Part shown: positions 16,071 to 58,073 of the stretch, one piece after another
Layout: every line of letters starts with the position of its first letter
How positions within the stretch are numbered: position 1 is the stretch's first letter
Sequence record: NC_048053.1
Strand: one strand, 5' to 3'
Length of the DNA stretch: 64,000 nt
The notes under the pieces: model-generated
Database searches by the model: none
What the model saw: only the letters and a program-made list of their open reading frames with translations
Told to the model about the DNA's origin: nothing
Translations under genes and position numbers: made by a program

Positions 16071-16314
16071 AAACAGACGCTCCATTTCTGCAAGCTGTTT
16101 TATTGGACGTTTGTTTTTGGAAATTGGCGTAGGGCGTGAACTGTGGTACTTCACGCGCTTTGGTAAAAATAACGATCATCGCATTTATCATTTGATTCAC
16201 GTAGGTGTTACGCGTCTGGTGAATCCTAGCGGCGAAGCGCATACTGATATGCTGGTGATCTCATTCCTCCTGCTAAATATTAAATTTGGTTGGATGACAA
16301 TTAAGGATAAGTAA
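16039..16314 (+). CDS. hypothetical protein (probable TTG start)
   Basis: Fills the gap between genes. GAGGG precedes TTG 16039. In frame with ORF 15919..16314. Confidence 0.35.
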   Translation: MKFRKLLTRNKNRRSISASCFIGRLFLEIGVGRELWYFTRFGKNNDHRIYHLIHVGVTRLVNPSGEAHTDMLVISFLLLNIKFGWMTIKDK

Positions 16315-16532
16315 TGGCTGACTATACCAAAGAAGCACTTGAGCAAATGGACATTGCTCAATTGACAGACGTTGCTGATGAGTTTCGTTTGTATGAGGAT
16401 ATGAGCGACGATGATGACGCTCCGGATCAATCTGAAATGATCGAAGATATTCTGGCAGAGCAAGAACGCTTGAATCGAGCTAATGAATATGCTTTGAACC
16501 GTTTGAAAAATTCTATCTTCACGCGAGATTAA
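16314..16532 (+). CDS. small acidic Rho-N/HeH-like protein
   Basis: LEQMDIAQLTDVADEFRL...QSEMIEDILAEQ has the helix-loop-helix pattern of Rho N-terminal modules. Confidence 0.55.
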   Translation: MADYTKEALEQMDIAQLTDVADEFRLYEDMSDDDDAPDQSEMIEDILAEQERLNRANEYALNRLKNSIFTRD

Positions 16533-16534
16533 AA

Positions 16535-17293
16535 ATGCCGAAACTCAAAAAAGAAACTCTGTTCGATTCGCTGCACGCTAAATTCTTCACAAAGAATCCG
16601 TGCGCACAAATGCAAGATATTTTGCGCATCGTCGTAGTGAAGCCTGTTAACTCTCTTCACTTTAAACTGGTCATGCGTCCTGCTGCGTGGAATCAGCACG
16701 AAGAAAACTTTCGTGAGATTTCTATCCGACGTGCCGAACTTCATTACGTTGATATAATCTGCACGCAGGGAACTTTCGCAGATAGCACGCACGCCGAAAC
16801 AATGGAACAGGCGATGGATGCAATCTATAAGTATCTTTCTGCCAGAAGCATAACGCGCACGAAACTTTTTGATGCTGCTGCTGTTTATGCTCATACGTTG
16901 AAAAATAGTAGTGCTGCTGGCGTTTCGGTTTCTGATTGTATTGACCGGATCATCATTCGTGATTTATCTGTAAACTACTCTACAGAACTGCATATAACGC
17001 AGAACAGCAATGGCAGAATTAAAATGTCGTTGTACGCGAACGGCGAACTTTCATTCTGCACCGAACCTCAAACGGAACAGCAACTGATAGACAAAGCAAC
17101 TTATGTTTTGTTTGGCGGTGGCCCTGTTGAAGACGCGTTGCCGAAACTGCTTCGCCACGAAGTTAAAGCTGTGACTCAAATGTTGGAGAAATACAATGTC
17201 AATCTCAACGAGGACACAATCACTTTTAAGAAGGAAGATTTTTTCTCCTTTGTTGGCGATCTTGTTCAGCACAAAACGCCGGGCAAGAATTAG
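16535..17293 (+). CDS. hypothetical protein
   Basis: 252 aa ORF. Confidence 0.7.
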   Translation: MPKLKKETLFDSLHAKFFTKNPCAQMQDILRIVVVKPVNSLHFKLVMRPAAWNQHEENFREISIRRAELHYVDIICTQGTFADSTHAETMEQAMDAIYKYLSARSITRTKLFDAAAVYAHTLKNSSAAGVSVSDCIDRIIIRDLSVNYSTELHITQNSNGRIKMSLYANGELSFCTEPQTEQQLIDKATYVLFGGGPVEDALPKLLRHEVKAVTQMLEKYNVNLNEDTITFKKEDFFSFVGDLVQHKTPGKN

Positions 17294-17449
17294 TTTAGCT
17301 GTATCGTTTGTCCTGTACATCTGTTTTATTTTGTTTGACGCTTTCGTTTATCACGTCTCACAACCTGTTCGTTTGGTGGTTATATTTTTCGCGAGCATGT
17401 TTTTCGGACACGCTTTGTTTAAGGCTTTTCCGATCAGGAGTCGTCCCCA

Positions 17450-17545
17450 ATGATTGAGTACGGCGAAATAAAATTCCATATGTCAAGCCGTCGATTCTGG
17501 TTCTGGATTGCGGTTGCATTATTTCTTATAATCTCTCTTAACTGA
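17450..17545 (+). CDS. small membrane peptide (MIEYGEIKFHMSSRRFWFWIAVALFLIISLN)
   Basis: AGGAG Shine-Dalgarno before ATG 17450, one hydrophobic helix. Below the ORF-track cutoff. Confidence 0.45.
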   Translation: MIEYGEIKFHMSSRRFWFWIAVALFLIISLN

Positions 17546-17559
17546 GGAAAGGTACTAAA

Positions 17560-18487: not shown

Positions 18488-18495
18488 GGTGAGCC

Positions 18496-18846: not shown

Positions 18847-18856
18847 GGAAATAAAA

Positions 18857-19105: not shown

Positions 19106-19110
19106 AATAA

Positions 19111-19141: not shown

Positions 19142-19177
19142 CGTTTCCTTGCCTAAATCTCTGGAGTCTGACCTAAC

Positions 19178-19607: not shown

Positions 19608-20021
19608 ATGGACAATCTACCAAAGAAAGGCGCTGTTTTTTCTCTCATCGAAGTTGCGAAAATCTCCAAAGAAAGTAATCGTGATGTTTATTTGGGATTC
19701 GTTCCTCCGGTACGCACCGAAAAGTGTCAGTATAAATTTCTGAAACCCTCTGTTGTTGAATATCAACATATTGGATTGGATGCTTTGCTCTTAATTCCCG
19801 GATGGGCTGAAACAAAATGGCGCTTCCTTCATTTCTCACCGATAGGTTTTAATGCCTGTTTTGCCGCAATAGATAGTGAGGAAATTTCTGCTCTTTGTGA
19901 ATATCAACCGCACACATTCGATCTTCTTGTGGATAGCGTGTGTTCGTTTCCGCTTAACACTGATTTCAAACAATCGCCTCCGTATGATCCTGCGATTCAT
20001 GGTCGATTGATTCCACAATAA
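19608..20021 (+). CDS. hypothetical protein (start ATG 19608)
   Basis: Leader GGAAATAGTTATG is identical to that of the next gene. Confidence 0.65.
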   Translation: MDNLPKKGAVFSLIEVAKISKESNRDVYLGFVPPVRTEKCQYKFLKPSVVEYQHIGLDALLLIPGWAETKWRFLHFSPIGFNACFAAIDSEEISALCEYQPHTFDLLVDSVCSFPLNTDFKQSPPYDPAIHGRLIPQ

Positions 20022-20057
20022 ATTGTGAAGGGCATTCGAAAGAGTGTCCTTTGAAAT
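20022..20057 (+). repeat. 36-bp leader hairpin cassette, copy 2
   Basis: Identical to 19549..19584. Confidence 0.9.
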
Positions 20058-20084
20058 TTTACCAAACCCAATAAGGAAATAGTT

Positions 20085-20429
20085 ATGTCTTCTACCACTC
20101 AAATCAATTTCGTTTTTCCTTCTCTGCATTCGTTTGAAGTAACACTCGGTTCCGGCGCTGTTGCAAATTTCTTCGGCGTTCGTGAGAACGAACAGCATTC
20201 CTTCTACGGGGAAGACGCGCTCCGCACAATGCAGAATTCAAATCTGATTGGTGCGCTGCCTCCGTTTGATCAGGCGATTGTGAATCTGCTGATCTCAAAT
20301 CAGGTTCAACGCGACGAACTTATCTATGAGCGTGCGCGTCCTCAAGTTCATTACTTCGAAGTTGAATCTGATGAACCGAATCATAATAAGCATGAAGGCG
20401 TGCTTCTTGTAATTCACCACTTCCGTTAA
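20085..20429 (+). CDS. hypothetical protein
   Basis: AAGGA Shine-Dalgarno. Confidence 0.65.
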   Translation: MSSTTQINFVFPSLHSFEVTLGSGAVANFFGVRENEQHSFYGEDALRTMQNSNLIGALPPFDQAIVNLLISNQVQRDELIYERARPQVHYFEVESDEPNHNKHEGVLLVIHHFR

Positions 20430-20510
20430 TATCGATGTGGTTGTTAAGGGCGTTCTTCTGAGCGCTCTTAGAAACCAATATCTTTTAACCCAAACACAAG
20501 GAAAAGTAAT

Positions 20511-20924
20511 ATGACATTCCCAACTCGCGGCAAAACCTACACCTTCGAACAACTCAATGATATGGAACTGCGCGATTCTCCTTTCCTGCGCTTCCGTACC
20601 AAAAACATTAATGGTGAAGATGTTATTGCCGTTATCCAAACATCGCATGTGACCGACGAACAGCTTGCATCTATTCCCGGTTTCTCTGAATCGCTTTGGA
20701 CGTTTCAGTATGAAACTGATGAGTGGATTCCTCTGTTCATGTTTGCTGAGAAATCTCCTATCGAAGATCTGGTTGATTGTGAAGAAGCAATTGATCCGTA
20801 CCGATGGGAGGAAGTTGGTGTTTATGCAACGCCGAAAGGTTTTCCGTGCGAGCAATATTATTATCGCGACGAGCACGGTGTAATTCGTCGCCGTCATGAT
20901 GGCAAACGCCACGACGAATATTAA
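20511..20924 (+). CDS. hypothetical protein
   Basis: AAGGA Shine-Dalgarno. Confidence 0.65.
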   Translation: MTFPTRGKTYTFEQLNDMELRDSPFLRFRTKNINGEDVIAVIQTSHVTDEQLASIPGFSESLWTFQYETDEWIPLFMFAEKSPIEDLVDCEEAIDPYRWEEVGVYATPKGFPCEQYYYRDEHGVIRRRHDGKRHDEY

Positions 20925-21269: not shown

Positions 21270-22061
21270 ATGAACAGCAAACTTGCTCTCATTGCCGCTA
21301 TCTGTATTGAAGCGTTTACCACGAACGAAACAGATAACATCGCCACCATTACCATTCGTGCTTTGCTGCACTCGGCAAACATCACAATCACGCCGACCAC
21401 AATCACTTTTGAAAGTGAAGATTTTTCAGATGACTGTGTTATCACTGCTGAACTTTCTTGTGCTGACGAAAACATTCGAATTCACTCTAAGGTATCTGAT
21501 GAATTCGCAGATGATTTTGAAAGCGATGATGAACGCACTGTTGTTTTTGCCGAAGCAACACACGCACTTCAATTTGTGTGTTCGCAGTTGGCAGGTTTAA
21601 CTCTCGATCCTGAATTCAGTATTGTTCCTCTGGAAGATTCTCGGATAAGTGGCATGAGAACTTCCGGCGACTCGCTTTCCGAAGATAGCGAAGAAGATGC
21701 TTATGAAAACATGTTTGATCAAATCGGCGGATCTGATTTTCTTCAAACAAAACGCACAAGTTTCTTGGATAAGCATTTTGGTTCTGCTGCTTTTATCAAA
21801 ATGTGCAGTGAACTCGAAGTGCCTCCGTTCGAAAACAAGCAGGCTGCGTTGGCTTACTTTGAACTCAAGGAGAATGATCCTGAATTGCAGGAGAGCGTTG
21901 TTGATACATTCGAAATGTACATGGAATTGGATACTTCCAGCTACGCTTGGGATGACTATTACGATTTGATGGAATCTATCATTGAAGAGATAGATAAAAA
22001 GCTCAAAGCAAAAAGTGATCGTAAATGTCTGCTGCGTCGCATAGGGGAATGGTTATCATGA
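21270..22061 (+). CDS. hypothetical acidic protein
   Basis: 263 aa ORF with AAGGA Shine-Dalgarno. Confidence 0.7.
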   Translation: MNSKLALIAAICIEAFTTNETDNIATITIRALLHSANITITPTTITFESEDFSDDCVITAELSCADENIRIHSKVSDEFADDFESDDERTVVFAEATHALQFVCSQLAGLTLDPEFSIVPLEDSRISGMRTSGDSLSEDSEEDAYENMFDQIGGSDFLQTKRTSFLDKHFGSAAFIKMCSELEVPPFENKQAALAYFELKENDPELQESVVDTFEMYMELDTSSYAWDDYYDLMESIIEEIDKKLKAKSDRKCLLRRIGEWLS

Positions 22062-22375
22062 ATAGTTTCAATGATTATCTCGTTGCACTTACCTGTCTGA
22101 TTGCCGCAATAACGGTGATTAATATAATCAATCCAGAAGTGCGCTACGGCTTGTTGCGTTTCTTTACTGGGGATTCTACTGACGCAATCCAGAAAGATTT
22201 TTGGGATCATGCCTTGAATGTCCCTATAGGAATGCGCTGGGGCGCACTCTGTGAACAGGTTGAGGAAGGAAGGCTTTCTTTCCCGGTAAAAATCAATCCT
22301 ATCTACATTGATAAAAATCTTGAATCCGTTCCTCAAGAAGTTGTTGATAGGATTAACGCGAGAAAGCTGCAATAA
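22058..22375 (+). CDS. hypothetical protein with N-terminal TM helix
   Basis: ATGA overlap with the upstream stop. Hydrophobic N-terminus. Confidence 0.6.
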   Translation: MNSFNDYLVALTCLIAAITVINIINPEVRYGLLRFFTGDSTDAIQKDFWDHALNVPIGMRWGALCEQVEEGRLSFPVKINPIYIDKNLESVPQEVVDRINARKLQ

Positions 22376-22489
22376 AGAAACAAAGCGTATTCCTGTGATG
22401 CACTGACTGCGCAGAAGATCCTGAACAAAGAAAGATTGATTAAAACTGCGCAGGTTTCGGCCTGCGTAAAACTGAAATGGAGATTTGTT

Positions 22490-23161
22490 ATGATTCCTGC
22501 TACTCGCGTACCAACAACCGAAGGCAAATTCTTTAACATCGACAATCGCTGGCAAGAGCGCTATATTTTCGTTCTGCCAGTTAAAATTCTCAAGGAAGGT
22601 TCTGAGCCTAAACCTATCTTTATTTTAGTGCAAGCCGACAAAGATACGCCCCGCGCAATTCATGAATATGTGTTTCCTTCTTTGCATGTTCATTATTCTG
22701 ATGAAGGAATTGCAAGTATCGAAGCTGTCCGTTTGGCGGTTCGTGCTCGTCTGTTTTTCCCGTTACCTTATGTAACCAGTCCTTTTGCATACATGGGTAT
22801 GCTTCCGGATGTACGCGCAGCAAGAGAAGGAGAACATTTTCTTGTTCCTTTTCTGTGTGAACAGGATGGATTATTTTCTCATAAAAATGCAGCGCGTCCG
22901 GCAATTAAGGTTTTAGCGGATTCAAACACACGTCTGTATTCGCCGGAAGTTGATCGTTTCTACTCTGAGACTCTTCCTTTATGGGAAGATCCTGTCGATA
23001 GTTCGTGGACGGATATCTGTAAATCTATTTCTGAGGGACGCATTGAATTAGATTTCAATTGTCCTGTTCCTTCCGAATTTCTGCAAATGGAAAGCGATAT
23101 AATTCCGCAAGAACTTGTCCACCACGTTTTAACTGAGCGCCGGAAAAGGAACATGTTATGA
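22490..23161 (+). CDS. hypothetical protein (start ATG 22490)
   Basis: GGAG Shine-Dalgarno, in frame with ORF 22436..23161. Confidence 0.65.
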   Translation: MIPATRVPTTEGKFFNIDNRWQERYIFVLPVKILKEGSEPKPIFILVQADKDTPRAIHEYVFPSLHVHYSDEGIASIEAVRLAVRARLFFPLPYVTSPFAYMGMLPDVRAAREGEHFLVPFLCEQDGLFSHKNAARPAIKVLADSNTRLYSPEVDRFYSETLPLWEDPVDSSWTDICKSISEGRIELDFNCPVPSEFLQMESDIIPQELVHHVLTERRKRNML

Positions 23162-26982: not shown

Positions 26983-27813
26983 ATGAAACCGTTAACTACT
27001 CCTGCTGAACTTCCCTCTTTCATGAAAGAGGCGTTTGACGAACTGACAGATGCTGTCGGAACCGTAGTCGAAAAACACGGCCTGACCAATGACGAATTGA
27101 TCGTTTATTTCGGAACTGGTTTTGCTCGTCTGATTGCGGATAACGGTCAAACCGAACACACCGTTATCATGAATACAACTTTGCCCGTTCGTGTTGGTCT
27201 TTTGGATGCCCACGAAGATTCCATTGAAAGAATGGATATGGTTGATCGTGTTGACGATGAAACAATCGCTATCGCAACAAGCAAACTTACGGCGCAGGTT
27301 TTCTCAAAACCGGAAATTGCACGTAACTGGTTAAAGTTTTATCTCTGCACAAATAAAGACGAAGCGTTTCCGAAAAAACCGAACAAAACCGTAGCGCTTC
27401 CGACCGATGTTATTGTGCGTTTACTTTCTGTCGATGCGATTGATATTGAATCTGTCGATATGGCAGTTATGCGTGATTTGCTTGTTGATGTTCTTCCGGA
27501 TCGCAAAGAAGAATTTCCTCGCATGAATCGTATGATGCTTACTGAGGAACTCGTTGAATATCTCAACGGCGTTAAACAGCCTCTGTGTGAGCCGCTGAAT
27601 TTCCATTCTATTGCTCGCACGATTGCGTCTGCGCTCAACATCACTATTAGCTGTGGTCGTGATACGGATCAGTATGATGTGCCTAAACCTGAAATGGTTT
27701 ATGTGTTATCGAAACTTCTTCCGTTCCGTGCTGAACAGCTTACGCACCTGAGCGAAGAACAGTTGAAACGCCTTGTGCGCAATATTGCGATGAGCAATAG
27801 AAATAAAGATTAA
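26983..27813 (+). CDS. hypothetical protein with HeH-like helical repeats
   Basis: First gene after the conserved promoter box. Contains DMAVMRDLLVDVL...MNRMMLTEELVEYL. Confidence 0.65.
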   Translation: MKPLTTPAELPSFMKEAFDELTDAVGTVVEKHGLTNDELIVYFGTGFARLIADNGQTEHTVIMNTTLPVRVGLLDAHEDSIERMDMVDRVDDETIAIATSKLTAQVFSKPEIARNWLKFYLCTNKDEAFPKKPNKTVALPTDVIVRLLSVDAIDIESVDMAVMRDLLVDVLPDRKEEFPRMNRMMLTEELVEYLNGVKQPLCEPLNFHSIARTIASALNITISCGRDTDQYDVPKPEMVYVLSKLLPFRAEQLTHLSEEQLKRLVRNIAMSNRNKD

Positions 27814-30186: not shown

Positions 30187-31011
30187 GTGAGGCTTACCGT
30201 GAAAAACTATGCGACTCTTTCTGAGTTAGTATCTGGCGTTCGATTCGCTCTTGTGGTTGAACGTATGAACGTCACCGAAATCAATCCGGACTTTGCTAAC
30301 GAGCTGGAAAAAGCAGAGGCCAGCGCCCATCCAAAAGAATTGCAGAACTACGCTATTGCTGCTCTGAAAAACTGTAAATTTTCAGTAACCAAAACTGTTC
30401 TGAATCAGGTTAGCAGTATGGCGGCAGAACATCCGTTGTTTGATCGTCCGTTTGAAATCATTTCAGACGAAGATATTAAACAGTTTCTTGTTTCTCTCCC
30501 TACAGAGAAATTGGTTACTGCGTGCCGTGCATGTAACGTTCTGGTAGATCATGGACACCTTCGCGATAGCGCGGAAGAGTTAGCGCGACTCTCTTCGATT
30601 CGTCTGCTTACTTTCATGCCGTCTGCTGAGTTGTCCGAAGTAGAATCTTTAAATCGAATGGAACTCTTCGCGTTCGCCGTAGAGCATTTTGTTTGGGTTC
30701 GTCACATTCAGAAGATCGACGATTTTTTGAAAACGGCGTTGAGTGAGAGACAGCGCGATGACCTTATGGCGAGTATCGGCGTTGATATTACCGATGAGGA
30801 TTATGAGGCAGATATTGAAGAAAATATTTCTGCTGAATTTGTCGCGACCGGACTCGAAGTATTACAGAATGATGCTGATTGGGTTGACTGGTCTGGATGG
30901 ACTCCAGAAGATCCGACGCTCGATGTTTTCGAAGCATTGAAATTCGCGTATGAAAAACTTACGCCTGAAACAGCAAAGGCAGCGCGTGACGCATTAAAGG
31001 ATATCAACTAA
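30187..31011 (+). CDS. hypothetical acidic helical protein with HeH-like repeats
   Basis: 274 aa. Start may be GTG 30199. Confidence 0.7.
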   Translation: MRLTVKNYATLSELVSGVRFALVVERMNVTEINPDFANELEKAEASAHPKELQNYAIAALKNCKFSVTKTVLNQVSSMAAEHPLFDRPFEIISDEDIKQFLVSLPTEKLVTACRACNVLVDHGHLRDSAEELARLSSIRLLTFMPSAELSEVESLNRMELFAFAVEHFVWVRHIQKIDDFLKTALSERQRDDLMASIGVDITDEDYEADIEENISAEFVATGLEVLQNDADWVDWSGWTPEDPTLDVFEALKFAYEKLTPETAKAARDALKDIN

Positions 31012-43870: not shown

Positions 43871-44704
43871 ATGTCTGCTGTAACAAGTCAGAATGATTTT
43901 GATGCAGTGCGTACCGCGCTGGAGAGCATTTTAAAAGCCAATGAAGATGCTCGCCGTGGACTGTACGAAAAGGGTGAGTTGTTTAACGACAACTTTTTGA
44001 AGTTTTCCGTTTCTGATTTACATAAAAGTTTGCAGAATACTCCGCGTAGAAAACTGCCTCAGATTGTTGAGAAAGTTTTAGGCGATTTCAACTTTAGAGC
44101 AATTCACGGAGATTGGGCGTTGGTCAAACACGATGCTCCCGATTTCACAATGATTGAATTGCCTCACTCTGCAACGAATGTCGTTGGCGTTACTTTTTCA
44201 AAGAGTGGTTATAAAGGAAAACTGGTAGAATTAGGCGATACTGATTTTGCGGAACCCGTTGAGAAGGAGAAAACAAAATCTCCCGCTAAACGGCAAACAA
44301 AGAAAGTTATTGCTAAGAAGGAAGAAGTAAAAAGTAATTCCGATGTTCAGGAAGATGTTGAACCTGAACATGTAGAGAAAGCGCCTGCCTCTGTATTGGA
44401 AGTCAAAAAGAGAAGGGCGGCGGTTGAAAAACTTTCTCCAGAAGATCGGCGTCAATCTTCTGGTACTTACCAACAATTGAAATTCGTTTTGCTTTCCATG
44501 ACCAAAGAAACGCTAGACGTATTGGCAGAAACATTAAACATTGGCGAGTTGGAACCAACGGTGCGTGGGGCGGTAGAAGATATTCTTCGCTTCATCGATT
44601 TCGAATCTGTTCGCGATGCAGCGGATAACATGGGAATCACTCTGAAAGCTCGCAACAATGCAGACGCAGCACTGTTAGAATTTCTGATCGTCCAATCTAA
44701 ATAA
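43871..44704 (+). CDS. hypothetical protein with C-terminal HeH-like modules
   Basis: LLSMTKETLDVLAETLNIG and ESVRDAADNMGITLK...ALLEFL. Confidence 0.7.
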   Translation: MSAVTSQNDFDAVRTALESILKANEDARRGLYEKGELFNDNFLKFSVSDLHKSLQNTPRRKLPQIVEKVLGDFNFRAIHGDWALVKHDAPDFTMIELPHSATNVVGVTFSKSGYKGKLVELGDTDFAEPVEKEKTKSPAKRQTKKVIAKKEEVKSNSDVQEDVEPEHVEKAPASVLEVKKRRAAVEKLSPEDRRQSSGTYQQLKFVLLSMTKETLDVLAETLNIGELEPTVRGAVEDILRFIDFESVRDAADNMGITLKARNNADAALLEFLIVQSK

Positions 44705-46157: not shown

Positions 46158-46895
46158 ATGCCTAACAACAAAACTTCCGTTCCTTCTCGCAAAGAATTCG
46201 CAGCAACTAGAGCGGCGGCAAAAATGAAATCTGCTCCTGCTTCTGTTCGTGCGAAAAATTCAACGAAAGGTGTTGGTCGCGAAACTGATGCTGATCGTTT
46301 GGATAAATTTGTGGTTGCGGTTCTGGAAGAATGGCGTGTAGCCAAAGAGAATAATCTCGAAGGCTCCGATCAAAACATCATCAAAGTTAGTATGCGCGAA
46401 ATCAATTTGCTCATGTCTCGCTCTTTGAAAAACACGCGTGTATCTCGACTGCACGATCTGATTAACGATACGTTATCCGGATTGAACATCGTAGACGTTT
46501 ACGGTTCGTGGGTGTTCGTTGATTGGGATTCTCCAGATTGTTTGTTTATCAAACTGCCGGAAACATCGACCAACGCGCTGCGTGTGAGTATTTCTTTCCC
46601 GAAAGGAAGTTCTGATTACTCGTTTCGCAAATCTACTGAGAAATTGATTGAACATGGTTTCGGTGGTGATGACGAAGACGATGATCAAACAGTAGTTGAT
46701 GATGGCGACATTGATCGTGAATATGATCGCCGTCCTGAGAATGTTCGTAAGACAGAAAAGCAATTGAGGTCTTGGACTCTTGAGCAATTACAAAATTTCG
46801 TAATTGAAAACAAGATTGAGGTCTGGGCCGGTGCTGATTCTAATTACGAGACACTTCTTGTTGCCGTGTTGGACTTCAAAACTAAACAGGCATAA
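46158..46895 (+). CDS. hypothetical protein with C-terminal HeH-like module (start ATG 46158)
   Basis: AAGGA Shine-Dalgarno. C-terminal LRSWTLEQLQNFVIENKI...ETLLVAVL. Confidence 0.7.
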   Translation: MPNNKTSVPSRKEFAATRAAAKMKSAPASVRAKNSTKGVGRETDADRLDKFVVAVLEEWRVAKENNLEGSDQNIIKVSMREINLLMSRSLKNTRVSRLHDLINDTLSGLNIVDVYGSWVFVDWDSPDCLFIKLPETSTNALRVSISFPKGSSDYSFRKSTEKLIEHGFGGDDEDDDQTVVDDGDIDREYDRRPENVRKTEKQLRSWTLEQLQNFVIENKIEVWAGADSNYETLLVAVLDFKTKQA

Positions 46896-47995: not shown

Positions 47996-49612
47996 ATGGC
48001 AATTGCAACCTCTACCAAACTGATCGGCAAAAACATCGTTCTGCTGGACGGCACCAAAACCAAAATCACTGACGCAATGGCAACTGGTTACAAAGTTGCT
48101 GATCGTTCTGTTCGTGTTGCGTCAAAACAAGTTGCTAAGAAAGGCGCTTGCTATTATGAGATTCCGGTTACGTCTCTGCGTGAACTGATCGATTCCGGTG
48201 AAGGTTACGTTTCTTTCGCTGACAAAGCGATGCAGAAAAAAGTTGGCACTGACGCTTTCCTCGAAAAGCCTGCTAAAACTTCTGGCCGCAAACCGAAAGA
48301 AGAAAAATCTTCCGGTCGCAAACCTAAAGAAGAGAAAACTTCTAACGTGCGTCCGAAACGTGGCAGCAAACCTACCAAAGAAGAAGACGACGCCGAAGAT
48401 AAAGCGTCCCGCCGTGTTAAACGTCGCGGCAATAGCGATGCAGGTTACGGCGCTCTGGCTGAGTTTCTGATCAACGGCGGTAACAGCAAGAAGAAAGTTT
48501 CCCTTGCTGCTATCGATCAGGATCTGGCAACCGTTCTTACTGAACGTCTGGTTAGCACGGTAAAAGAAACTTCGCTGGCGAAATTCGACGGCAACAACGC
48601 AATGATTCAAAACGCATTCGATGTTGGTTACTCAACTGAATTCGATGCTACTGGCGGCGACGTTCGCGTAACACTGAACATCAAATACGCGCTGGAACAG
48701 CCTGAGCCGGAAGAAGTAAACGGTGGTTTCGAAATTTCTCCGGAACTGGCGAAGAAAATCAAAGCGCGTGTTGGTAAAACCGTTGGTAAGAAACTCGCGG
48801 CTGCAATCGCTGAACACCTCGGCGTTGAAGCGTCCGATATGACGGCTGGTACTCTCCTGTCGCGTGAGGGTGAAGATGGTCAGTTTGTTTTCTGTGGCGC
48901 AAGCGGCGAAGACAATAACAAAGCTGTACTGTTTAACACCGAAAGCGAAAAATTCCGCACTGTAGGCGGCGCTTCTCTGGCTAACTACTCTATCGTTGAG
49001 GAAGACGAAGAGGAAGAAGAGTCTGAGGAAGAAGAGGAAGAAGAGATTGAGGAAGAGGAAACCGAAGAAGAGGAAGACGACGCCGAAGGCGAAGACGATT
49101 CCGAAGACGGTGATGACGATTCCGAAGACGGTGACGATGACGCAGAAGGCGAAGATGACGAGGAAGATTCTTTCGAATACGCTTCCGTAAATAAAAAGCA
49201 ACTCGCTAATGTGAACAAAAAAATCACGTCTAAAAATCTGCCGATGCTGTCTAAACTGTGGCGCGTTCCGCAAAGCGCTCTGGTCACTGGCCTGAAACTG
49301 ACTGATGGTGATGATACTTTCATCTTCATTGGTATGGATGATGACGGCGATCTGCTGGTAGTTGAAGAAGGCGCGAAAGAAGTTGTTGCGTTTGACGCTG
49401 ACGATATTCAAAGCCTGTCTGATTACTCTCCGGTTGTTGGTGAAGCAGAAGACGACGCAGAAGGCGAAGACGAAGACTTCGAAGATGACGGCGAAGATTA
49501 CGACGACATGGACATTGAAGAACTGCGCGATGTTGTAGTTCAGAAAGGTCTGGCAAAAGTTCGCGCCGCCGAAAACATGACGGAGAAAAAACTCCGCTCA
49601 CTGCTGAAATAA
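47996..49612 (+). CDS. multidomain acidic protein: N-terminal beta domain, K-rich repeats, duplicated beta domains, D/E tracts, C-terminal HeH-like module
   Basis: AGGAG Shine-Dalgarno, 538 aa, strongly biased codon usage. Confidence 0.8.
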   Translation: MAIATSTKLIGKNIVLLDGTKTKITDAMATGYKVADRSVRVASKQVAKKGACYYEIPVTSLRELIDSGEGYVSFADKAMQKKVGTDAFLEKPAKTSGRKPKEEKSSGRKPKEEKTSNVRPKRGSKPTKEEDDAEDKASRRVKRRGNSDAGYGALAEFLINGGNSKKKVSLAAIDQDLATVLTERLVSTVKETSLAKFDGNNAMIQNAFDVGYSTEFDATGGDVRVTLNIKYALEQPEPEEVNGGFEISPELAKKIKARVGKTVGKKLAAAIAEHLGVEASDMTAGTLLSREGEDGQFVFCGASGEDNNKAVLFNTESEKFRTVGGASLANYSIVEEDEEEEESEEEEEEEIEEEETEEEEDDAEGEDDSEDGDDDSEDGDDDAEGEDDEEDSFEYASVNKKQLANVNKKITSKNLPMLSKLWRVPQSALVTGLKLTDGDDTFIFIGMDDDGDLLVVEEGAKEVVAFDADDIQSLSDYSPVVGEAEDDAEGEDEDFEDDGEDYDDMDIEELRDVVVQKGLAKVRAAENMTEKKLRSLLK

Positions 49613-49678: not shown

Positions 49679-50614
49679 ATGAAAATGGCTATCACTCCTA
49701 ACAAAGATCTGATTAACGTTGTTGTTCGTTTGCTGGATGGTAAAACTTCTCGCATTACTGGTATTACCAAAACCGGTTACACTGTCGAAGGCGTCGATAA
49801 ACAAATTCCGATGACGGAACTTGTGCGCAAAGGCCGCGTGTTGCAGCAAATCGATCCGGCGAAGCTGAAAGATCTTCCGGCTAATCAAACCTATCTGATG
49901 AGCGACGGCTATTTGCATATCCACACTCGCGATGCAATGCGGCGCATCAAGAAAGGCGAAACCGTTGATATCCCGCCGTCAAAAACTGAATGGCAGCGCA
50001 AAACTAAAACGGTGAAAATTGTGAAACCGAAAGGCGAAGTGAAGCCGAAAAAGATTACGCCGAACAAACCTGTTCGTGCTGATGTGTCGAAAGTTAAAAC
50101 CGCTCCAAAGCGTTTGAAAACTGACGCGCAGAAAACGAAAAAGGCTGTCACAAAATCTGTGACTAAATCAACTCCGGTTGATCGTACCGCCGAAACTACT
50201 GAGACGTTGTTCTTAGTTATCGAAAATGCTCGCTCGAATCGCAAAGCGTTCAAAGAGTTTAAAAATATCGTTTCAACTGCAATCGGCGTTACGGCAAAAG
50301 ATCTGCCGGATACTGCAAACGAGATCATCGAAAAATTCGGTGCTGCGAAAGTACGCAAAGGTCTGGCGGCGCTCTCTGAGCATTTTAATCGCCGTCGCGC
50401 AGAATTAAGTCTGCCGCGTAGTCTGAAAGCGTTTATCGCAAGCGGTCGTTTGACTCTGACTCCTGCGCAATTACGTCAGGTGTTGGAAGTGATTGCTCCG
50501 ACAATTCCGAAAGAAGTTGTTGCTGATGTTGTGAAATATTATTTCAGCGGCGAATTCTTTATCGGCAAAACTCCGGATCGCAACACTCCGAAAAAAGTTA
50601 ACGGTGGTAATTAA
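49679..50614 (+). CDS. basic K-rich protein whose N-terminal domain is paralogous to the upstream gene
   Basis: VRLLDGKTSRITGITKTGYTV vs IVLLDGTKTKITDAMATGYKV. Confidence 0.75.
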   Translation: MKMAITPNKDLINVVVRLLDGKTSRITGITKTGYTVEGVDKQIPMTELVRKGRVLQQIDPAKLKDLPANQTYLMSDGYLHIHTRDAMRRIKKGETVDIPPSKTEWQRKTKTVKIVKPKGEVKPKKITPNKPVRADVSKVKTAPKRLKTDAQKTKKAVTKSVTKSTPVDRTAETTETLFLVIENARSNRKAFKEFKNIVSTAIGVTAKDLPDTANEIIEKFGAAKVRKGLAALSEHFNRRRAELSLPRSLKAFIASGRLTLTPAQLRQVLEVIAPTIPKEVVADVVKYYFSGEFFIGKTPDRNTPKKVNGGN

Positions 50615-52701: not shown

Positions 52702-55661
52702 TGAATTCCTCTCAAACTTTTGGAACGGCGTCGCACACTGCATCTGTTACCGATCAGAATCTGAATGCAGGTTCTCCGGCAACTAAAAGCACGGTAATTG
52801 TGGTGCTGTGTCCGACTGTAAACGGCAACCAAATTTTCCGTGCGGAAAATAACGGTAATGTTTCTCAAACTGTCGCGCAGGGTAAAGCTCTCAATCGTCT
52901 GACAGATCTTCTGTCGATGGCGGGGGATAACGCTGGTCATGAACTGATGAGCGCTGCCGCTTCTATTGATGAGCGCTGCAAGCTGAAAGACAGTGCTGCG
53001 ATGATTCTCCGCTATACTGTAAATGGTAGTGTAGAGCGTCTCCAGAAAACTCTGTCTGAGGCGTTGTTTAAGGTCGGCGAAAAAGCTGCAAATGATAATA
53101 CTACGTTAGCGTCGTATGCCAGTCGTTTTGGTGTTCATGCAATCGCAGTATCTGCGGAAAGTAATTCTTACGCAGTCGTTACAGCGATTCGTGATCAACT
53201 GGAAGCGTTCGACCGCAACGAAAGCAATTTTGTTGTTGCGCAGAAAGCAAGTGTTGAGCAAATCAATGCTCCGGTTATCGACTGGTCTGCAACTTCCGCA
53301 AATGTTGTTCTGGAAGGTGCTGCGTTAAGTTTTGTAGTTCGCTCGGAAAAAACCCGCGTGAATTTCCTGATTAATCCTATTAAGGGGAATAATGTTGTGA
53401 GTAACGATCAGAAAGCTCTGTCTGTTTTCAGCCGCGAGAATCAGGCTTCCGTAACTATGGAAGAAAAAGTCGCTGCACTTGAAGCACTCGGTTACGATCT
53501 CGGCGCTATGCCGGATGAAGAGATCGCGCTGTCTTATGATAGCGAGCGTGTTGATTTTCTGGAAGGCGCAGGTGTTGAAGTGAATTCCAGCGACGAAGGC
53601 GAAACTGACGACGCCGAAGAAGGTGAAGAAGAATCCGAAGAAGGTGAAGAGGAAGAGGAAGAAGAAGACGAAGAAGAATTCTCCGCTTCTGAAACTCTGG
53701 CAGAAATTCTGACTAACGCCCAACTGGATCGCGCTCAACTGAAAAAGCTGGTGTTCCTCGCAGGTGGTAAAGTGTTTACCACTGACACCGAAGAAAGTCT
53801 GACGGTGAAACTGCTGGAACTGGTCGAAGAAAAAGACTACAGCGAATTCTTCCAGTTTGCGCTGGACGCTAACGAACGTCTCGGCGGCGTTGATGGCTTT
53901 GCTGACTTCCTGCACGCGGAAAGCGTTCTGGCTACCGACGAAGATGAGGACGACGAAGGCGAAGAAGGCGAAGAAGGCGAAGACGAGGATGATTCTGATG
54001 AAGATGATTCCGAAGACGAAGACGAAGATGATTCTGGCGAAGACGAAGGTGAAGACGAAGATGATTCCGAAGAAGATCTTTCTTTCAACGCTGTGGTAGA
54101 ATTCATCGAACTTATCGGCGGCGATCTGAATCGCGAAGTAATTCGCGCAATTGCTCGCTCCGAAAGTTTCGGCCTGAAAACTTACAAGAACGAAGACGCT
54201 GCTGCGATTTTCGAACGTGTAGTTGAAGTGCTGAACAACAACGAAATCTCTCCGGAAGATTTCGAACAACTGATTCACGATCTGGCGCAGATTGAAGTTG
54301 TTGCCGATGCGTATCCGGAATGGGCTGAGTACGAAGTCAATCCGACGGACTACACTGAACTGTTTGCCTACGAAGGCGGTTCTCTGACTCACGAACAGCG
54401 CGTTGCAGCGCTGGAAGCTGCCGGAAACGATCTCGAAGGTATGGGCATGGTTGCCGTGCTGAAACTTTTCGAAGACTATCGCCGTGAAAATGGTTACGGT
54501 CAGGAAAGTGAAGAAGCCGAAGACGAAACCTATGCGCTGGATTCCGGTGAAGGTGAAACCGACGACGAAGGCGAAGAAGCTGGCGACGAAGAATCCGAAG
54601 AGTCGGAAGAAGAATCTGAGGAAGAAGAATCCGAAGACGAAAACGACGAAGCGTTTGTTTCTGAATCTTCTGAAAACGATCTCGGTACTTTCCTGCGTGT
54701 GCGTCAGGAACAAATGCTGTTGGTCAACTTCGCGCTGACTGATCGCAGTACCTTCGAAGATCTCGCCGAAGAACTTCGCGACCAGAACGGTGTTGATTAT
54801 CGTGTACCAATCAACATGAACGACGAAGCAGAAGGTTCTATGTACCTGCCGCTGACTGTCGCGAGCGATTTGCTGTCCGGTTCCGCTGCGCTTCCGTTTA
54901 TGTCTGATCGCAAAACTTTCAACGTAGAAGATTACGCTGAAAAAATGGCTAACACTATGCGCGGTCAAATCTCGGCGCTGCTGTATGAAGGCCGTCTGGA
55001 AGCTGGACAAGATCCGTATACTAGCGGTTTAGTCCTCGGTGATTTCGTCGAAGATGAAGACGAAGATCTGAATGAGGATGAACTGAGTTCGGAATATCTG
55101 AGCGAACTGGTTGGCGATCATATTCCGATGGCTTCTCTGTATAACGCACATGTTGGCGTGCGTCCGGTTGTTGTCGATACCGAAAGCACTGTTTTGAACA
55201 CTATCGTTCTTAACATTGCAATGCCTTGCATTTGGGGCATCGGCAAGAAGAAAGTAAAAGATCTGGTAATCAGCACTTACAATCGTGTGCTTGCGCACAT
55301 CGGCGAAACTGATATTAAAGTCTATGTCGGTTTCACCCTGAATGCTGGTTCTCTGGTTTCTGATGAAAACCTGCAATCGGTTGTTCGCTCTGTCGGCGAA
55401 ATGGCGAGTGAAGAAATCGCTGTTCACTCCTTCACTACCAACGATGTTCAACGCATCGAAGAAAGTGAAGATCTGGTTGAAGCTGCGCATTCTGTCGGCA
55501 CTGAAAATCTGCCGCTGGCGCTGTTGTCCTCCGGTATCGCTGACGCTGCATTTGCGAACGGCGGTGATCTGATTGTTATCCTGTCTCCTGTTGGTGACAG
55601 TGACGACGAAGATGATTCTGACTCTGATGAAGATGAAGATGAAGACGAGTCCGAAGAGTAA
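52701..55661 (+). CDS. very large acidic protein with repeated helical modules and D/E tracts
   Basis: 986 aa. Repeats EEKVAALEALGYDL / EQRVAALEAAGNDL, plus HeH-like LDRAQLKKLV and LNREVIRAIA segments. Confidence 0.8.
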   Translation: MNSSQTFGTASHTASVTDQNLNAGSPATKSTVIVVLCPTVNGNQIFRAENNGNVSQTVAQGKALNRLTDLLSMAGDNAGHELMSAAASIDERCKLKDSAAMILRYTVNGSVERLQKTLSEALFKVGEKAANDNTTLASYASRFGVHAIAVSAESNSYAVVTAIRDQLEAFDRNESNFVVAQKASVEQINAPVIDWSATSANVVLEGAALSFVVRSEKTRVNFLINPIKGNNVVSNDQKALSVFSRENQASVTMEEKVAALEALGYDLGAMPDEEIALSYDSERVDFLEGAGVEVNSSDEGETDDAEEGEEESEEGEEEEEEEDEEEFSASETLAEILTNAQLDRAQLKKLVFLAGGKVFTTDTEESLTVKLLELVEEKDYSEFFQFALDANERLGGVDGFADFLHAESVLATDEDEDDEGEEGEEGEDEDDSDEDDSEDEDEDDSGEDEGEDEDDSEEDLSFNAVVEFIELIGGDLNREVIRAIARSESFGLKTYKNEDAAAIFERVVEVLNNNEISPEDFEQLIHDLAQIEVVADAYPEWAEYEVNPTDYTELFAYEGGSLTHEQRVAALEAAGNDLEGMGMVAVLKLFEDYRRENGYGQESEEAEDETYALDSGEGETDDEGEEAGDEESEESEEESEEEESEDENDEAFVSESSENDLGTFLRVRQEQMLLVNFALTDRSTFEDLAEELRDQNGVDYRVPINMNDEAEGSMYLPLTVASDLLSGSAALPFMSDRKTFNVEDYAEKMANTMRGQISALLYEGRLEAGQDPYTSGLVLGDFVEDEDEDLNEDELSSEYLSELVGDHIPMASLYNAHVGVRPVVVDTESTVLNTIVLNIAMPCIWGIGKKKVKDLVISTYNRVLAHIGETDIKVYVGFTLNAGSLVSDENLQSVVRSVGEMASEEIAVHSFTTNDVQRIEESEDLVEAAHSVGTENLPLALLSSGIADAAFANGGDLIVILSPVGDSDDEDDSDSDEDEDEDESEE

Positions 55662-55671
55662 TCTGTAAATA
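55661..55671 (+). promoter_or_regulatory. CTGTAAATA motif upstream of the coiled-coil gene
   Basis: Intergenic, immediately after a stop codon. Confidence 0.55.
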
Positions 55672-55716
55672 AATGGTGTAGGGCGAAATGCCTTGCACCA
55701 TTTTTAAGGATTCCCA

Positions 55717-56469
55717 ATGTCTGATACGCAACTTGAAGTTTTACATCGGACACTATTTTCAACGCGTCAGTCACTTGATGATAATATCATGGCACGTCGC
55801 GCAACCGAAAAGGTGTTGGATGAGCGCCTGAGTGAATTAGGCCGTTGTCAGGTTCAACTGAGTATTGCTCAAGAGCGAATTCTGAATCTCCAGACTGAAT
55901 ATAATAATGTTGTGGAGAATTCGGAAATCAAAGCGAAGGCTATGGAAGAAACTTTCCGTACCTCCGAAGCAAAACTGAAAGAAGAAATAGTAATTCTGAA
56001 CGACAAGATTTCGGAACTGCGTGCGCTCTGCCGTGATATGCCGGAAACTCCTGCGGAACATTTGCTGGAAAACGTACTGCATAAAACTATGGCGCATCTG
56101 CATTCAACTGTGGTCTATTTCGCTGCCCTCACGTTGAATTCCAATCCGCAATCTCTGGCTGGTAAAGAGTTGCTCGCGCTGACGAAAAAGCAAACGCTGA
56201 ATCCGGGCAAATTGTTTTCTCTATCTGTAAAGGAAAAGCAGATAGTTCTCGAAAACATTCGTTCGTTTGTGCAAGCAGAACTTGATAATTCTGAATACAC
56301 AAACATCCGTGCGGTAATTAATGCAATGACCGCCTCGGACAAATCGTGGAAGACGTTTCGCGATTGCCTGAAAAATTCTAAGGTGCTTTATTCCCTCGCA
56401 TCTGACAAACTGGAGTTTGACTCTGCGGTAAACGCGGTCGTTGAATTCATTCTTGAACAATTGAAGTAA
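55717..56469 (+). CDS. coiled-coil protein
   Basis: Heptad-rich N-terminal half. AAGGA Shine-Dalgarno. Confidence 0.7.
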   Translation: MSDTQLEVLHRTLFSTRQSLDDNIMARRATEKVLDERLSELGRCQVQLSIAQERILNLQTEYNNVVENSEIKAKAMEETFRTSEAKLKEEIVILNDKISELRALCRDMPETPAEHLLENVLHKTMAHLHSTVVYFAALTLNSNPQSLAGKELLALTKKQTLNPGKLFSLSVKEKQIVLENIRSFVQAELDNSEYTNIRAVINAMTASDKSWKTFRDCLKNSKVLYSLASDKLEFDSAVNAVVEFILEQLK

Positions 56470-56491
56470 TGAACTGGAGTTCGAAATAATC

Positions 56492-57067
56492 ATGGCTAAA
56501 TCCAAGTCCACCTCACTGGTTCCGAAACGTATTGACCGCATCACGAAAAAAGCTGGCGCGATTGCGCAGGTCAAATCTAAACAAACTGATCTGGCTCACG
56601 ATATCGAAATCTCGACTCGTGGCGCACACGAAGTTTCAGGTTTCGTAATCGAAACTACTGCTGACGGTAGCGTAACCATTCGCCACAAAAAAGGCGCTGG
56701 TAGCTCCAAACAGATCGTAAGCACGTTCACCAAAAACCAAATCATTAGCTTTATCGGTGAAGCTGGTGAAATGGGTCAACTGCTGGTTGACGCATACATG
56801 GTTGTTCAGGTGATTCGCGGTCAAACTGTAAAAGTTAAAGACGATGTGATTGTTGCAACTGATATTCAGACTGGCGAAGTCACTCGCATTGCAACCAACA
56901 TTCCGGGCTACGACGTTCGTGCAATTGTTGACGAGGCTGTTGCTTCTAAAAAGTACGGCACTCCGGTTGCATCCGAAAAGAAAAAAGGCGCTAAGGCAGA
57001 AAAAATTGCCAAAGGCGGCAAAGATAAGTCCGGTAAAAAGAAAAAGAAGTCTGACGAAAACTTCTAA
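56492..57067 (+). CDS. basic beta-rich protein with Lys-rich tail (possible nucleic-acid binder)
   Basis: GGAG Shine-Dalgarno, strongly biased codon usage, K-rich C-terminus. Confidence 0.7.
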   Translation: MAKSKSTSLVPKRIDRITKKAGAIAQVKSKQTDLAHDIEISTRGAHEVSGFVIETTADGSVTIRHKKGAGSSKQIVSTFTKNQIISFIGEAGEMGQLLVDAYMVVQVIRGQTVKVKDDVIVATDIQTGEVTRIATNIPGYDVRAIVDEAVASKKYGTPVASEKKKGAKAEKIAKGGKDKSGKKKKKSDENF

Positions 57068-57083
57068 TTCGGTTCCGGCCTGA

Positions 57084-57220
57084 ATCTGTAAAGTAACGTT
57101 GAAGGACAGAATCTGTAAATCAATTCTGTCAGACAGAAACTGTAAACAGTGAATGTCAAACGCCACTGATTAATTTCGGTGGCGTCAGTTAAAAACATTT
57201 TTCTCTTAATCTGTAAATAG
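57084..57220 (+). promoter_or_regulatory. array of four CTGTAAA motifs (57086, 57113, 57140, 57211)
   Basis: First three are spaced exactly 27 bp apart. Confidence 0.65.
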
Positions 57221-57272
57221 TAATTGAACAAAGCGTTCATTACTGAACTTTCCTAAAAGGATAAAATGAATC

Positions 57273-58073
57273 ATGGCTAAAGCAAAGAAAACCTCTAACG
57301 TGGCAATGGAAACTCTGGCTAAAATGGCTGGCCTGCTGGTTGAAGCGGCTGCCGATGCAGAAGTTGCAGAACTTCTCTCCGAAGCTGGTCTGACTGTTGC
57401 CGCTAAAGGTAAAGGCAAAGCTAAAGCTAAAGCTGAACCGAAAGCAAAAGGCGGCAAGAAAAAGAAAGTGACTGCCGCACAAATCGTTGAAGCCATCGAA
57501 GATGGTGAGTCCATCGAACTCGAAGGCACTGACGAAAAAGTTCTGCGCGAGGCCGTGGTCAAAGCAAAACTGACCAGTAAGAAAAAAGCGGAGAGCCTCG
57601 ATGAAGAGGAACTGCTGGAACTGATTCAGGAAGCGTTTGGTTCGTCTGACGAAGATGAAGACGACGAAGACGAGGATGATTCTTATGAAGATGATTCCGA
57701 TGATGAAGACGGCGACGACGAAGACGACGAGGATGATGAAGACTCGGACGACGACGAAGACGGCGACGACGAAGACGACGAAGACGGCGACGACGAAGAC
57801 GACGAAGACGACGACGAAGACGACGAAGATGATGAGGACGACGAAGACGAGGACGAAGATGAAGATCGTGATCTGGAAGACCTCGACGAAGACGAACTCC
57901 GCGCGTTAGCCATCGAAGAAGGCGTGTTCACCAAAGCGCAGGCCAAAAAGAAAGATGAAGATGCACTCCGCGAAGCACTGGAAGCGCACTTCGCTGGTGA
58001 CGACGATGAAGACGAAGACGAAGACGACGAAGACTTCGACGACGAAGACGAAGACGACGAAGACGACGAGTAA
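57273..58073 (+). CDS. extremely acidic protein with two HeH-like modules (nucleoplasmin/chaperone-like composition)
   Basis: DEKVLREAVVKAKLTSKKKAESLDEEELLELIQ and DEDELRALAIEEGVFTKAQAKKKDEDALREALE, separated by ~65 D/E-rich residues. Confidence 0.75.
   Translation: MAKAKKTSNVAMETLAKMAGLLVEAAADAEVAELLSEAGLTVAAKGKGKAKAKAEPKAKGGKKKKVTAAQIVEAIEDGESIELEGTDEKVLREAVVKAKLTSKKKAESLDEEELLELIQEAFGSSDEDEDDEDEDDSYEDDSDDEDGDDEDDEDDEDSDDDEDGDDEDDEDGDDEDDEDDDEDDEDDEDDEDEDEDEDRDLEDLDEDELRALAIEEGVFTKAQAKKKDEDALREALEAHFAGDDDEDEDEDDEDFDDEDEDDEDDE

Follow-up and report, generated by a model that had tools for sequence, protein, structure and literature searches.

The genome of Dickeya phage vB_DsoM_JA29 (genus Salmondvirus; 253,323 bp; NC_048053.1), a jumbo phage placed in the Lu11/PaBG/Y3/Yoloswag/Alexandra group of jumbo myoviruses (PMC7412058), contains a stretch of 64,000 nucleotides in which a sequence-only reading had seen an expanded family of Rho-N/helix-extended-helix (HeH)-like modules. 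This stretch, hereafter the window, is 100% identical to record positions 186001–250000, and the window coordinates used throughout equal the record coordinate minus 186,000. The question raised by the locus is whether at least ten mostly acidic proteins do share one such module, and what a module of this kind would do in a phage. The listed segments are present in the genes named, which are annotated coding sequences of JA29; all ten carry the annotation ‘hypothetical protein’, and no functional assignment for the ten proteins was found in Pfam, PHROGs or NCBIfam. The description of the proteins as mostly acidic is borne out, with 47% Asp/Glu (D/E) in gp309, 16–25% in each of the other nine, and net charges of −97 for gp309, −104 for gp273 and −183 for gp306. 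By sequence comparison, a core module is demonstrable in three to five of these acidic proteins, not in ten. Only gp309, gp301 and gp273 are provable on this basis in JA29 itself, gp298 is added by orthology, and gp272 is set apart by a different domain of Rho-N type.

Identification of the core module in gp309, gp301 and gp273

Syntenic regions of relatives were taken from phage JA11, one IMG/VR genome (63–83% protein identity) and ten Alexandravirus-like genomes, and a hidden Markov model (HMM) seeded on the C-terminal module of gp309 from 12 orthologues was iterated over 5,747 open reading frames. The iterated HMM converged in JA29 on gp309 (two copies), gp301 and gp273, with the best reversed decoy at an expectation value (E) of 0.3–0.8, and in Alexandravirus on the C-terminus of the gp298 orthologue, a 511-residue protein and a C-terminal extension of the gp311 orthologue. 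When the entire JA29 genome (253 kb) was scanned in six frames, only the four JA29 copies emerged, the next match having an E of 0.5. The same membership was obtained by profile–profile comparison, as hhalign of the module profile against the 94 protein families of the window scored the four copies at 40–79, compared with at most 17.9 for unrelated families and at most 14.6 for the reversed null, and reciprocal comparisons from 24 candidate segments against the 94 families closed the same cluster of gp309, gp301 and gp273. Widening the profile with 44 metagenomic relatives left the membership in the window unchanged, and no further segment joined.

Every gene of the window lies on the plus strand, as do all features given below. 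The product of the gp309 gene (57273–58073; 266 residues; PHROG 30618, function unknown) consists of an N-terminal helical segment, a K/A-rich linker, module copy A, a poly-D/E stretch of ∼75 residues, module copy B and an acidic tail. Copy A (residues 83–123; 57519–57641) is detected with an HMM E of about 1e-15 to 9e-15 and an hhalign score of 68 (E 3e-13), and is reciprocal in hhalign with copy B and gp301; copy B (residues 200–240; 57870–57992), which supplied the sequence modelled below, has an HMM E of about 1e-15 to 5e-15. The gp301 module lies at the extreme C-terminus (residues 501–537 of 538; 49496–49606; HMM E 5e-12, hhalign E 3e-14) and is kept in all 12 of 12 orthologues between acidic tracts that vary, and the orthologue alignments of gp309 and gp301 alike present the modules as conserved islands among freely varying D/E tracts. 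In gp273 the module spans residues 620–660 (HMM envelope 627–656; 33488–33610), with an HMM E of 8e-7 and an hhalign score of 40 (E 1.4e-6), and its best reciprocal non-self matches are gp301 and gp309. Here the start of helix 2 (MSESEL...) had previously been taken for the start of the module; the unit begins ∼20 residues upstream. Mutual alignment beyond shuffled and reversed nulls is seen for the four modules of gp309, gp301 and gp273, and is not seen for gp243, gp264, gp271, gp295, the JA29 copy of gp298, gp306, the second gp272 site or three gp273 sites.

The acidic regions of these proteins have peculiarities of their own. In the terminal poly-D/E tail of gp309 (58002–58070, ...EDEDFDDED...) one Phe is invariant in 12 of 12 orthologues while the acidic residues around it vary, which recalls the aromatic residue that proteins of the single-stranded DNA-binding protein (SSB) type have in their acidic tails. 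Residues ∼310–443 of gp273 (32558–32958) are encoded by tandemly repeated DNA that is nearly perfect (period 123, 95% matches) and specifies poly-D/E blocks, each closing with a proline-/basic-rich peptide, VTPPSK-I/V-PR-x-KPLP, which occurs three times and looks like a recently amplified short linear motif within an acidic region.

Predicted fold of the core module

AlphaFold2 was run on a 49-sequence alignment of the module with gp309 200–240 as the target. The resulting model has a predicted local distance difference test (pLDDT) value of 94.8, with helices at positions 7–16 and 30–40 and a one-turn helix at 22–26 in the linker; two helices of ∼10 residues joined by an extended linker are the hallmark of the HeH hairpin, and the prediction is that of an independently folding unit. 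In Foldseek searches of the PDB, the matches that span the whole module were SAP domains and the Rho N-terminus (among them 2do1, 9cl7_E, 4l8r_B, 1zbh_A and 9ff7_A), at a TMq of 0.65–0.75 and a root mean square deviation (rmsd) of 1.3–2.0 Å over 38–40 columns, with E of at least 3. The SAP domain of Hcc-1 (2do1) superposes with a TMq of 0.75 and an rmsd of 1.4 Å over 40 columns, the SAP domains of FAN1 (TMq 0.70) and 3′hExo (TMq 0.65–0.73) also cover the entire module, and the Rho N-terminus (9ff7_A) does so with a TMq of 0.71 and an rmsd of 1.5 Å over 38 columns. Among the named top matches in BFVD are phage proteins labelled ‘Rho termination factor N-terminal domain-containing’ and ‘HeH/LEM domain’ (TMq 0.8–0.9, E 0.3–3). 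The Pfam matches of the 49 module sequences, all sub-threshold, fall largely in the same fold group, i.e. SAP in seven, LEM in six, Ish1 in four and Rho_N in one, with the adaptor domain EAD7 in a further seven matches; the best E is 0.0011 for SAP, 0.0043 for LEM and 0.11 for Rho_N. The module profile searched against PDB sequences found only Nudix and other chance segments, and no SAP or Rho. Assignment of the modelled core module to the HeH fold is well supported, whereas membership of any curated sequence family is not.

Charge pattern, copy number and distribution

The local set comprises 120 modules in 86 proteins, 29 of which hold two to four copies, and a consensus was drawn from the 108 distinct copies. 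It opens with an acidic N-flank (D-L-e-D-L-D-e-D) followed by helix 1 (E-L-R-x-l-v-V-e), a lysine-rich linker (k-L-a-t-k-k-K-A-k-K-m) and an acidic start of helix 2 (D-e-d-e-L-r-e-L-L), so that charge is both conserved and segregated along the module in the 108 copies. D/E tracts had been described beside the modules, and a run of at least five D/E residues does occur within 25 residues on either side of about half of the copies. The terms modular and multivalent are likewise apt, as gp309 has two copies and proteins in relatives reach four or more.

The family is narrowly distributed. Among 1.84 billion representative proteins only 44 clusters match (E ≤0.001), many with two to six copies, and these include gp309-like, gp301-like and other architectures. 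In isolated phages, homologues of gp301 and gp309 are confined to the lineage's Dickeya, Erwinia and Yersinia members and to phage NCTB, always as ‘hypothetical’ proteins. The module-bearing set differs between sister genera, because proteins that carry the module in one have JA29 counterparts that lack it or are absent; in Erwinia phage pEa_SNUABM_33 (Alexandravirus), for example, it is present on the 511-residue protein (L003:31066–32601) and on the extension of the gp311 orthologue (L003:48734–49489). An unrelated metagenomic phage (JGI 3300022670, L183:8001–9320) encodes a protein, P0005, in which each of four core modules precedes a second short conserved motif. Its gene directly follows PDDEXK_1 and AAA_24 genes, and three genes further upstream there is one for a uracil-DNA glycosylase (UDG)/family-A DNA polymerase. 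The place after AAA_24 is one often occupied by SSB-like genes. A reading of P0003 as a gp32-type SSB was unsupported by BLASTP against gp223, the annotated SSB of JA29, or by a PDB search.

A probable Rho-N-type domain in gp272

A profile of 72 distinct gammaproteobacterial Rho N-termini was compared with all 94 window families. Residues 24–67 of gp272 (31088–31219) align in hhalign with Rho residues 6–49 over 44 columns (score 34.8, probability 84.5%, E 6.9e-6), and gp272 is the single outlier: none of the other 93 families exceeds 16.8, and the maximum of the reversed null is 18.0. The core module reaches only 14.3 against the same Rho-N profile. The likeness stops at Rho residue 49, and neither Rho_RNA_bind, for the cold-shock-like OB subdomain of Rho, nor any other Pfam model matches gp272. 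On these profile comparisons gp272 24–67 is probably a Rho-N-type domain, an HeH sub-type distinct from the core module. The second segment listed for this protein, residues 123–166, is within noise both against the module profile and in reciprocal hhalign.

Tests of the proposed ten-protein family

The 18 listed segments were used to build a leave-one-protein-out HMM, which was scored on the 94 window proteins, their reversals and 20 shuffled proteomes. Only gp309 200–235 exceeded the nulls (13.3 bits; shuffles reached no more than 5.4), all other held-out proteins scoring no better than non-family, reversed or shuffled sequences; because the procedure left all but gp309 in the noise, a single family of ten proteins fails the comparison with shuffled sequences that had been proposed for it. 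None of the Pfam HeH models (SAP, PF02037; Rho_N, PF07498; LEM, PF03020; HeH, PF12949) reached threshold on the ten proteins or on the isolated segments, the one match being gp243 to Rho_N (E 0.045–0.078, ∼13 bits, 13.4 for the full-length protein, cut-off 24.9), and Pfam searches of the gp273 C-terminus, the gp272 N-terminus, a gp243 orthologue and the gp298 C-terminus gave nothing relevant. The helix-start motif [LM][TSD]xx[EQ]L occurs 15 times in the window compared with 4.0 ± 2.0 in shuffles, and its density per 1000 residues is 2.6–3.3 in the named proteins compared with ∼0.19 in the remaining genome. This motif is a generic hydrophobic-staple/capping-box start of alpha-helices, and as the segments had themselves been chosen by it, the enrichment is not independent evidence. 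A loose regular expression of the listed pattern was uninformative, its short core occurring 46 times in many unrelated proteins, and an all-against-all phmmer search returned only whole-domain paralogies (gp295/gp298, gp301/gp302 and gp235/gp237) and matches between acidic tracts, and no modules. To judge from their sequences, most of the other listed segments are ordinary amphipathic helix starts that fit a loose pattern. What stands of the expanded Rho-N/HeH-like family is a recurring HeH module with four copies in gp309, gp301 and gp273; the figure of at least ten proteins does not stand, and neither does the notion of one single family, there being at least two unrelated HeH sub-types and a private repeat in gp306.

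Remaining candidate segments

One of the remaining candidates is gp298, whose C-terminal segment (residues 201–244; 46758–46889) occupies the position of a true core module in the Alexandravirus orthologues. The latter match a module profile built without them (hhalign E 6.4e-6), whereas the JA29 C-terminus scores at most 13.4 against the module with clean alignments and is undetectable by sequence. As the Alexandravirus orthologues still match, the position is ancestral, with the JA29 copy diverged or replaced. Initial matches of gp298 and gp295 to the module, and of their C-termini to each other, vanished with clean alignments (the two JA29 C-termini then score at most 13.4 against each other) and were artefacts, because query and target had shared orthologue or paralogue sequences. 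The gp295 protein (43871–44704) is a paralogue of gp298 through its N-terminal domain; its two proposed C-terminal modules are unsupported, with scores of at most 12.5 against the module profile in hhalign with clean alignments. The full-length AlphaFold2 model of gp295 has a mean pLDDT of 50. A common two-helix fold had been expected of all the segments; it is predicted with confidence for the core module, whereas the gp295 C-terminus is helical at a pLDDT of ∼40, which is too low to judge the segments. The N-domains shared by gp295 and gp298 (43871–44200 and 46158–46600; ∼75 residues, E 1.5e-9) are kept in Alexandravirus, and the gp295 N-domain model (pLDDT 60–85) gives non-significant Foldseek matches that are mostly to winged-helix proteins (Stn1, CodY, MukE/F, Scc1-C, RepE and Fur).

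The gp306 protein has a private three-copy repeat of ∼35–40 residues (residues ∼250–290, 476–509 and 557–591; 53448–54473), with E of 3.8e-6, 2.6e-5 and 0.002–0.01 between copies in hhalign, a helix-loop-helix pattern in the orthologue alignment and long D/E tracts between the copies. No sequence link between this repeat and the core module was found by hhalign, and gp306 340–383 is in the noise of the sequence tests. The conserved globular part of gp306 is its C-terminal 330 residues (PHROG 36461, function unknown). In gp273, residues 477–508 (33059–33154) are a borderline, possibly diverged copy with the highest score among the remaining matches, 20.9 in hhalign compared with forward noise of up to 17.9 and a reversed null of 14.6 (HMM E 0.8–1.1). 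Residues 101–144 and 675–718 of the same protein are in the noise of the sequence tests; the latter segment is the best-conserved block of gp273 and contains an ‘ELASRGY’ SAP-like signature.

For gp264 (26983–27813), sequence tests are in the noise and the evidence is structural. A 276-residue JA29 protein appears at rank 42 of the BFVD matches (TMq 0.82, rmsd 1.8 Å over 40 columns, E 2.6), and gp264 is the only 276-residue coding sequence annotated in the JA29 record; an HeH-like hairpin in gp264 is a hint from model comparison, not a result. The modules proposed in gp243 (16314–16532; hhalign 12.6–13.6, in noise) and gp271 (30199–31011; scores of 12–22, the sole notable match being a weak reciprocal one with gp264) are unsupported.

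Genomic setting and neighbouring basic proteins

The window falls within a plus-strand block that extends over ∼120 kb (from 175.8 kb of the record, via the origin, to 41.5 kb) and is made up mainly of small hypothetical genes with DNA-metabolism genes scattered among them, namely those for a sigma factor, SSB, a RecA-like protein, methyltransferases, UvsE, dUTPase and topoisomerase II. The minus strand of the JA29 record bears most of the structural genes. Immediately downstream of gp309 (net −97) lies the gene for gp310 (58245–58766), an H1-like K/A/P-rich repeat protein with a net charge of +27, and this adjacency is kept in Alexandravirus. The gp310 protein has an N-terminal coiled-coil-looking segment, K/A/E/P-rich repeats and an acidic-aromatic tip (GFEFELDD), and its gene contains a tandem DNA repeat with a 33-bp unit at 58418–58493. 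Topoisomerase II genes also adjoin gp309, in a synteny kept across genera together with gp310, and the K-rich proteins gp302 and gp308 are encoded nearby.

Other relationships in the window are recorded here. The neighbours gp301 (net −59) and gp302 (net +31) have an N-terminal domain of ∼140 residues in common (E 4e-5; 47996–48418 and 49685–50116), followed in both by K-rich linkers, and form a side-by-side acidic/basic paralogue pair. The last 130 residues of gp223 (1904–3088) are Asp/Glu runs of 10–17 residues alternating with K/S-rich runs, an unusual block-polyampholyte tail. The all-against-all search also paired two DNA methyltransferases, gp235 and gp237 (11502–12671 and 12864–14087; E 1e-9), and the small hypothetical proteins gp250/gp252 (19608–20924) and gp255/gp256 (22058–23161).

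Relation to known domains and acidic-tail proteins

Among the closest known likenesses of the core module are SAP domains (PF02037), which have ∼35–40 residues in a helix-extended linker-helix arrangement; the model superposes on them, in matches short of statistical significance, at 1.3–2.0 Å over 39–40 columns, the module has the ‘ELR...hydrophobic...(G)L...K..L’ pattern with basic residues gathered in the linker, and SAP is the most frequent sub-threshold Pfam match, tied in count with EAD7. SAP domains bind double-stranded (A/T-rich) DNA or structured RNA via the linker and the start of helix 2. The module differs in staying below the Pfam gathering score, in having the SAP glycine in only some copies, in an extra helical turn in the linker, and in being net acidic, embedded in poly-D/E and encoded by a bacteriophage, whereas SAP domains are mainly eukaryotic and chromatin-associated. 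The Rho N-terminal domain (PF07498) has the same HeH hairpin, and it is gp272 24–67 that resembles it in sequence; the core module is not so related, and in none of the ten proteins is there a Pfam match to the adjoining OB-fold RNA-binding domain of Rho. The LEM/HeH domains (PF03020 and PF12949; LAP2, emerin, MAN1 and Heh1/2) are small docking units of the same fold clan that bind DNA or the partner protein BAF, and are echoed here by the sub-threshold LEM matches and by one ‘HeH/LEM domain’ protein in BFVD. There is, however, no significant sequence match to them, and no membrane segment or BAF-like partner is evident here, whereas LEM proteins are inner-nuclear-membrane proteins. By analogy, a small binding unit joined to a long poly-D/E tail also recalls HMGB1, DEK, T4 gp32 and T7 gp2.5; DEK combines SAP with acidic tracts, and T4 gp32 and T7 gp2.5 have acidic C-termini. 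Such tails can mimic DNA, autoinhibit a basic surface or recruit basic partners, and the invariant aromatic residue of the gp309 tail would fit this comparison; there is no homology, however, and the binding unit in JA29 is neither an HMG box nor an OB fold but an HeH hairpin.

Earlier work has recorded Rho-N/SAP HeH domains as infrequent DNA-binding domains in phage and plasmid proteins (PMC5512222). Many phage proteins are annotated with Rho_N, as the BFVD matches illustrate. No description of the proteins considered here was found in papers on the JA phages, PaBG, the Erwinia relatives or jumbo-phage biology, in keeping with the earlier remark that no description of such a system was known to its author. 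What appears to be new is a sub-family outside the curated models, present in multiple copies in extremely polyacidic proteins and restricted to one jumbo-phage lineage.

Possible roles of the module proteins

The explanation we prefer, to which we attach an even measure of belief and doubt, is that the core module represents a lineage-specific HeH family of ∼40 residues with a SAP/Rho-N fold, found in a few acidic proteins as docking units that tether polyanionic tails. Duplication and domain shuffling may account for the spread of the family among a small number of strongly acidic, early-region proteins of Lu11/PaBG-like jumbo phages, with a second, independent HeH domain of Rho-N type in gp272. 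By analogy with SAP domains, the lysine-rich loop would be the contact surface and each module a small docking unit for a nucleic acid or nucleoprotein partner, several copies per protein giving avidity. The modules would tether long, DNA-mimicking polyanionic tails, and the tails would engage basic proteins, for which the H1-like gp310, the K-rich gp302 and gp308 and host nucleoid proteins are candidates.

Several results weigh against this explanation. The net charge of the JA29 modules is 0 to −8, which disfavours direct DNA binding and argues against simple DNA binding by a net acidic module. No structural match with E ≤0.001 was found by Foldseek in the PDB, and elsewhere only close relatives reached this level, which is attributable to a query of only 41 residues; the best E-values in the PDB belong to 29-column partial matches in CheA P4. 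No Pfam HeH model is at gathering score on the ten proteins, the segments or the 49 module sequences. As for gp272, Pfam Rho_N misses it and the assignment rests on profile–profile comparison, and HMMER, although it places gp272 and its orthologues in the first three positions, gives them an E of 0.14–0.29, which is not significant alone. That the modules are net acidic speaks for a partner that is a protein or nucleoprotein, or for an autoinhibitory role of the tails, and does not decide between a nucleic acid and a protein ligand.

A pure protein–protein adaptor, working on the LEM–BAF or death-like/EAD paradigm through homotypic or heterotypic contacts between module-bearing proteins, or through contacts with a single phage or host protein, and making no contact with nucleic acid, would agree with the net negative charge, with the sub-threshold LEM (6 of 49) and EAD7 (7 of 49) matches and with the occurrence of the same module on otherwise unrelated proteins. 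SSB proteins have acidic recruiting tails, and the modules of P0005, which lie in an acidic C-terminal region encoded within a replication/recombination cluster, may be likened to these. We nonetheless consider this explanation unlikely, as all of the Pfam matches are far below threshold and the conserved Lys-rich loop is the very feature by which SAP domains contact DNA.

It is improbable, in our estimate, that the modules have no common function and are merely stable, easily evolved spacer hairpins in disordered polyacidic proteins, spread by recombination of GA-rich repeats. Their position between low-complexity D/E tracts made of tandem-repeat DNA, the free variation of acidic tract length among orthologues and the decay of the JA29 gp298 copy beyond recognition are what such spacers would produce, but no part of gp309 or of the gp301 C-terminus is better conserved than the modules between genera that have only ∼35% identity elsewhere, and the charge pattern is kept over 108 distinct copies.

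A more ambitious form of the tethering explanation, to which we give comparably little credence, is a chromatin-like toolkit of the Lu11/PaBG-like jumbo phages in which gp309, gp301 and gp273 would chaperone or tether gp310, gp302 and gp308 and thereby compact, partition or shield phage or host DNA. If true, it would be a bacterial-virus counterpart of eukaryotic SAP proteins and acidic chaperones paired with histone H1.

The original proposal, that one HeH family in at least ten proteins forms a scaffold on one shared target and organises the replication compartment, appears quite improbable. Its core family and multivalency are real, genes for basic H1-like and K-rich products lie in the vicinity, the window exceeds the remaining genome in density of the helix-start motif, and gp264 (structural hint), gp298 (orthology) and gp273 477–508 (borderline) lend weak extra support. 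However, seven of the ten proteins fail the leave-one-out and reciprocal profile tests, gp272 and gp306 fall in other sub-families, and AlphaFold2 gives gp295 no confident C-terminal fold. That all modules dock on a shared target was pure conjecture for which no supporting evidence was found. For the compartment, annotations in the JA29 record include a sigma factor and a DksA-like protein but none for a nuclear-shell protein, tubulin or phage multisubunit RNA polymerase (an absence of annotation, not proof of absence); neither the record nor the literature on this phage group points to such a structure. Finally, jumbo phages often package many internal proteins, and gp309, gp306 and gp301 are large, abundant-looking and highly charged, but packaging of the acidic proteins in the capsid and ejection with the DNA, with the module as a capsid-targeting or DNA-tethering tag, is highly improbable given that the genes lie in the plus-strand early-type/DNA-metabolism block away from the minus-strand structural block and that the phage Y3 record annotates the orthologues only as ‘hypothetical protein’.

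Implications

Few known docking domains are as small as HeH modules such as SAP, LEM and Rho-N, whose roles in phages are, to our knowledge, essentially unstudied. The present analysis replaces a diffuse ten-protein claim with a clean, testable set of four modules and one Rho-N-like domain. The core family escapes Pfam, PHROGs annotation and NCBIfam, and is repeatedly fused to polyacidic tails beside H1-like and topoisomerase genes. If the modules do tether DNA-mimicking tails to DNA or nucleoid proteins, they would provide a handle on DNA organisation, or on takeover of the host nucleoid, in jumbo phages that do not form a nucleus.

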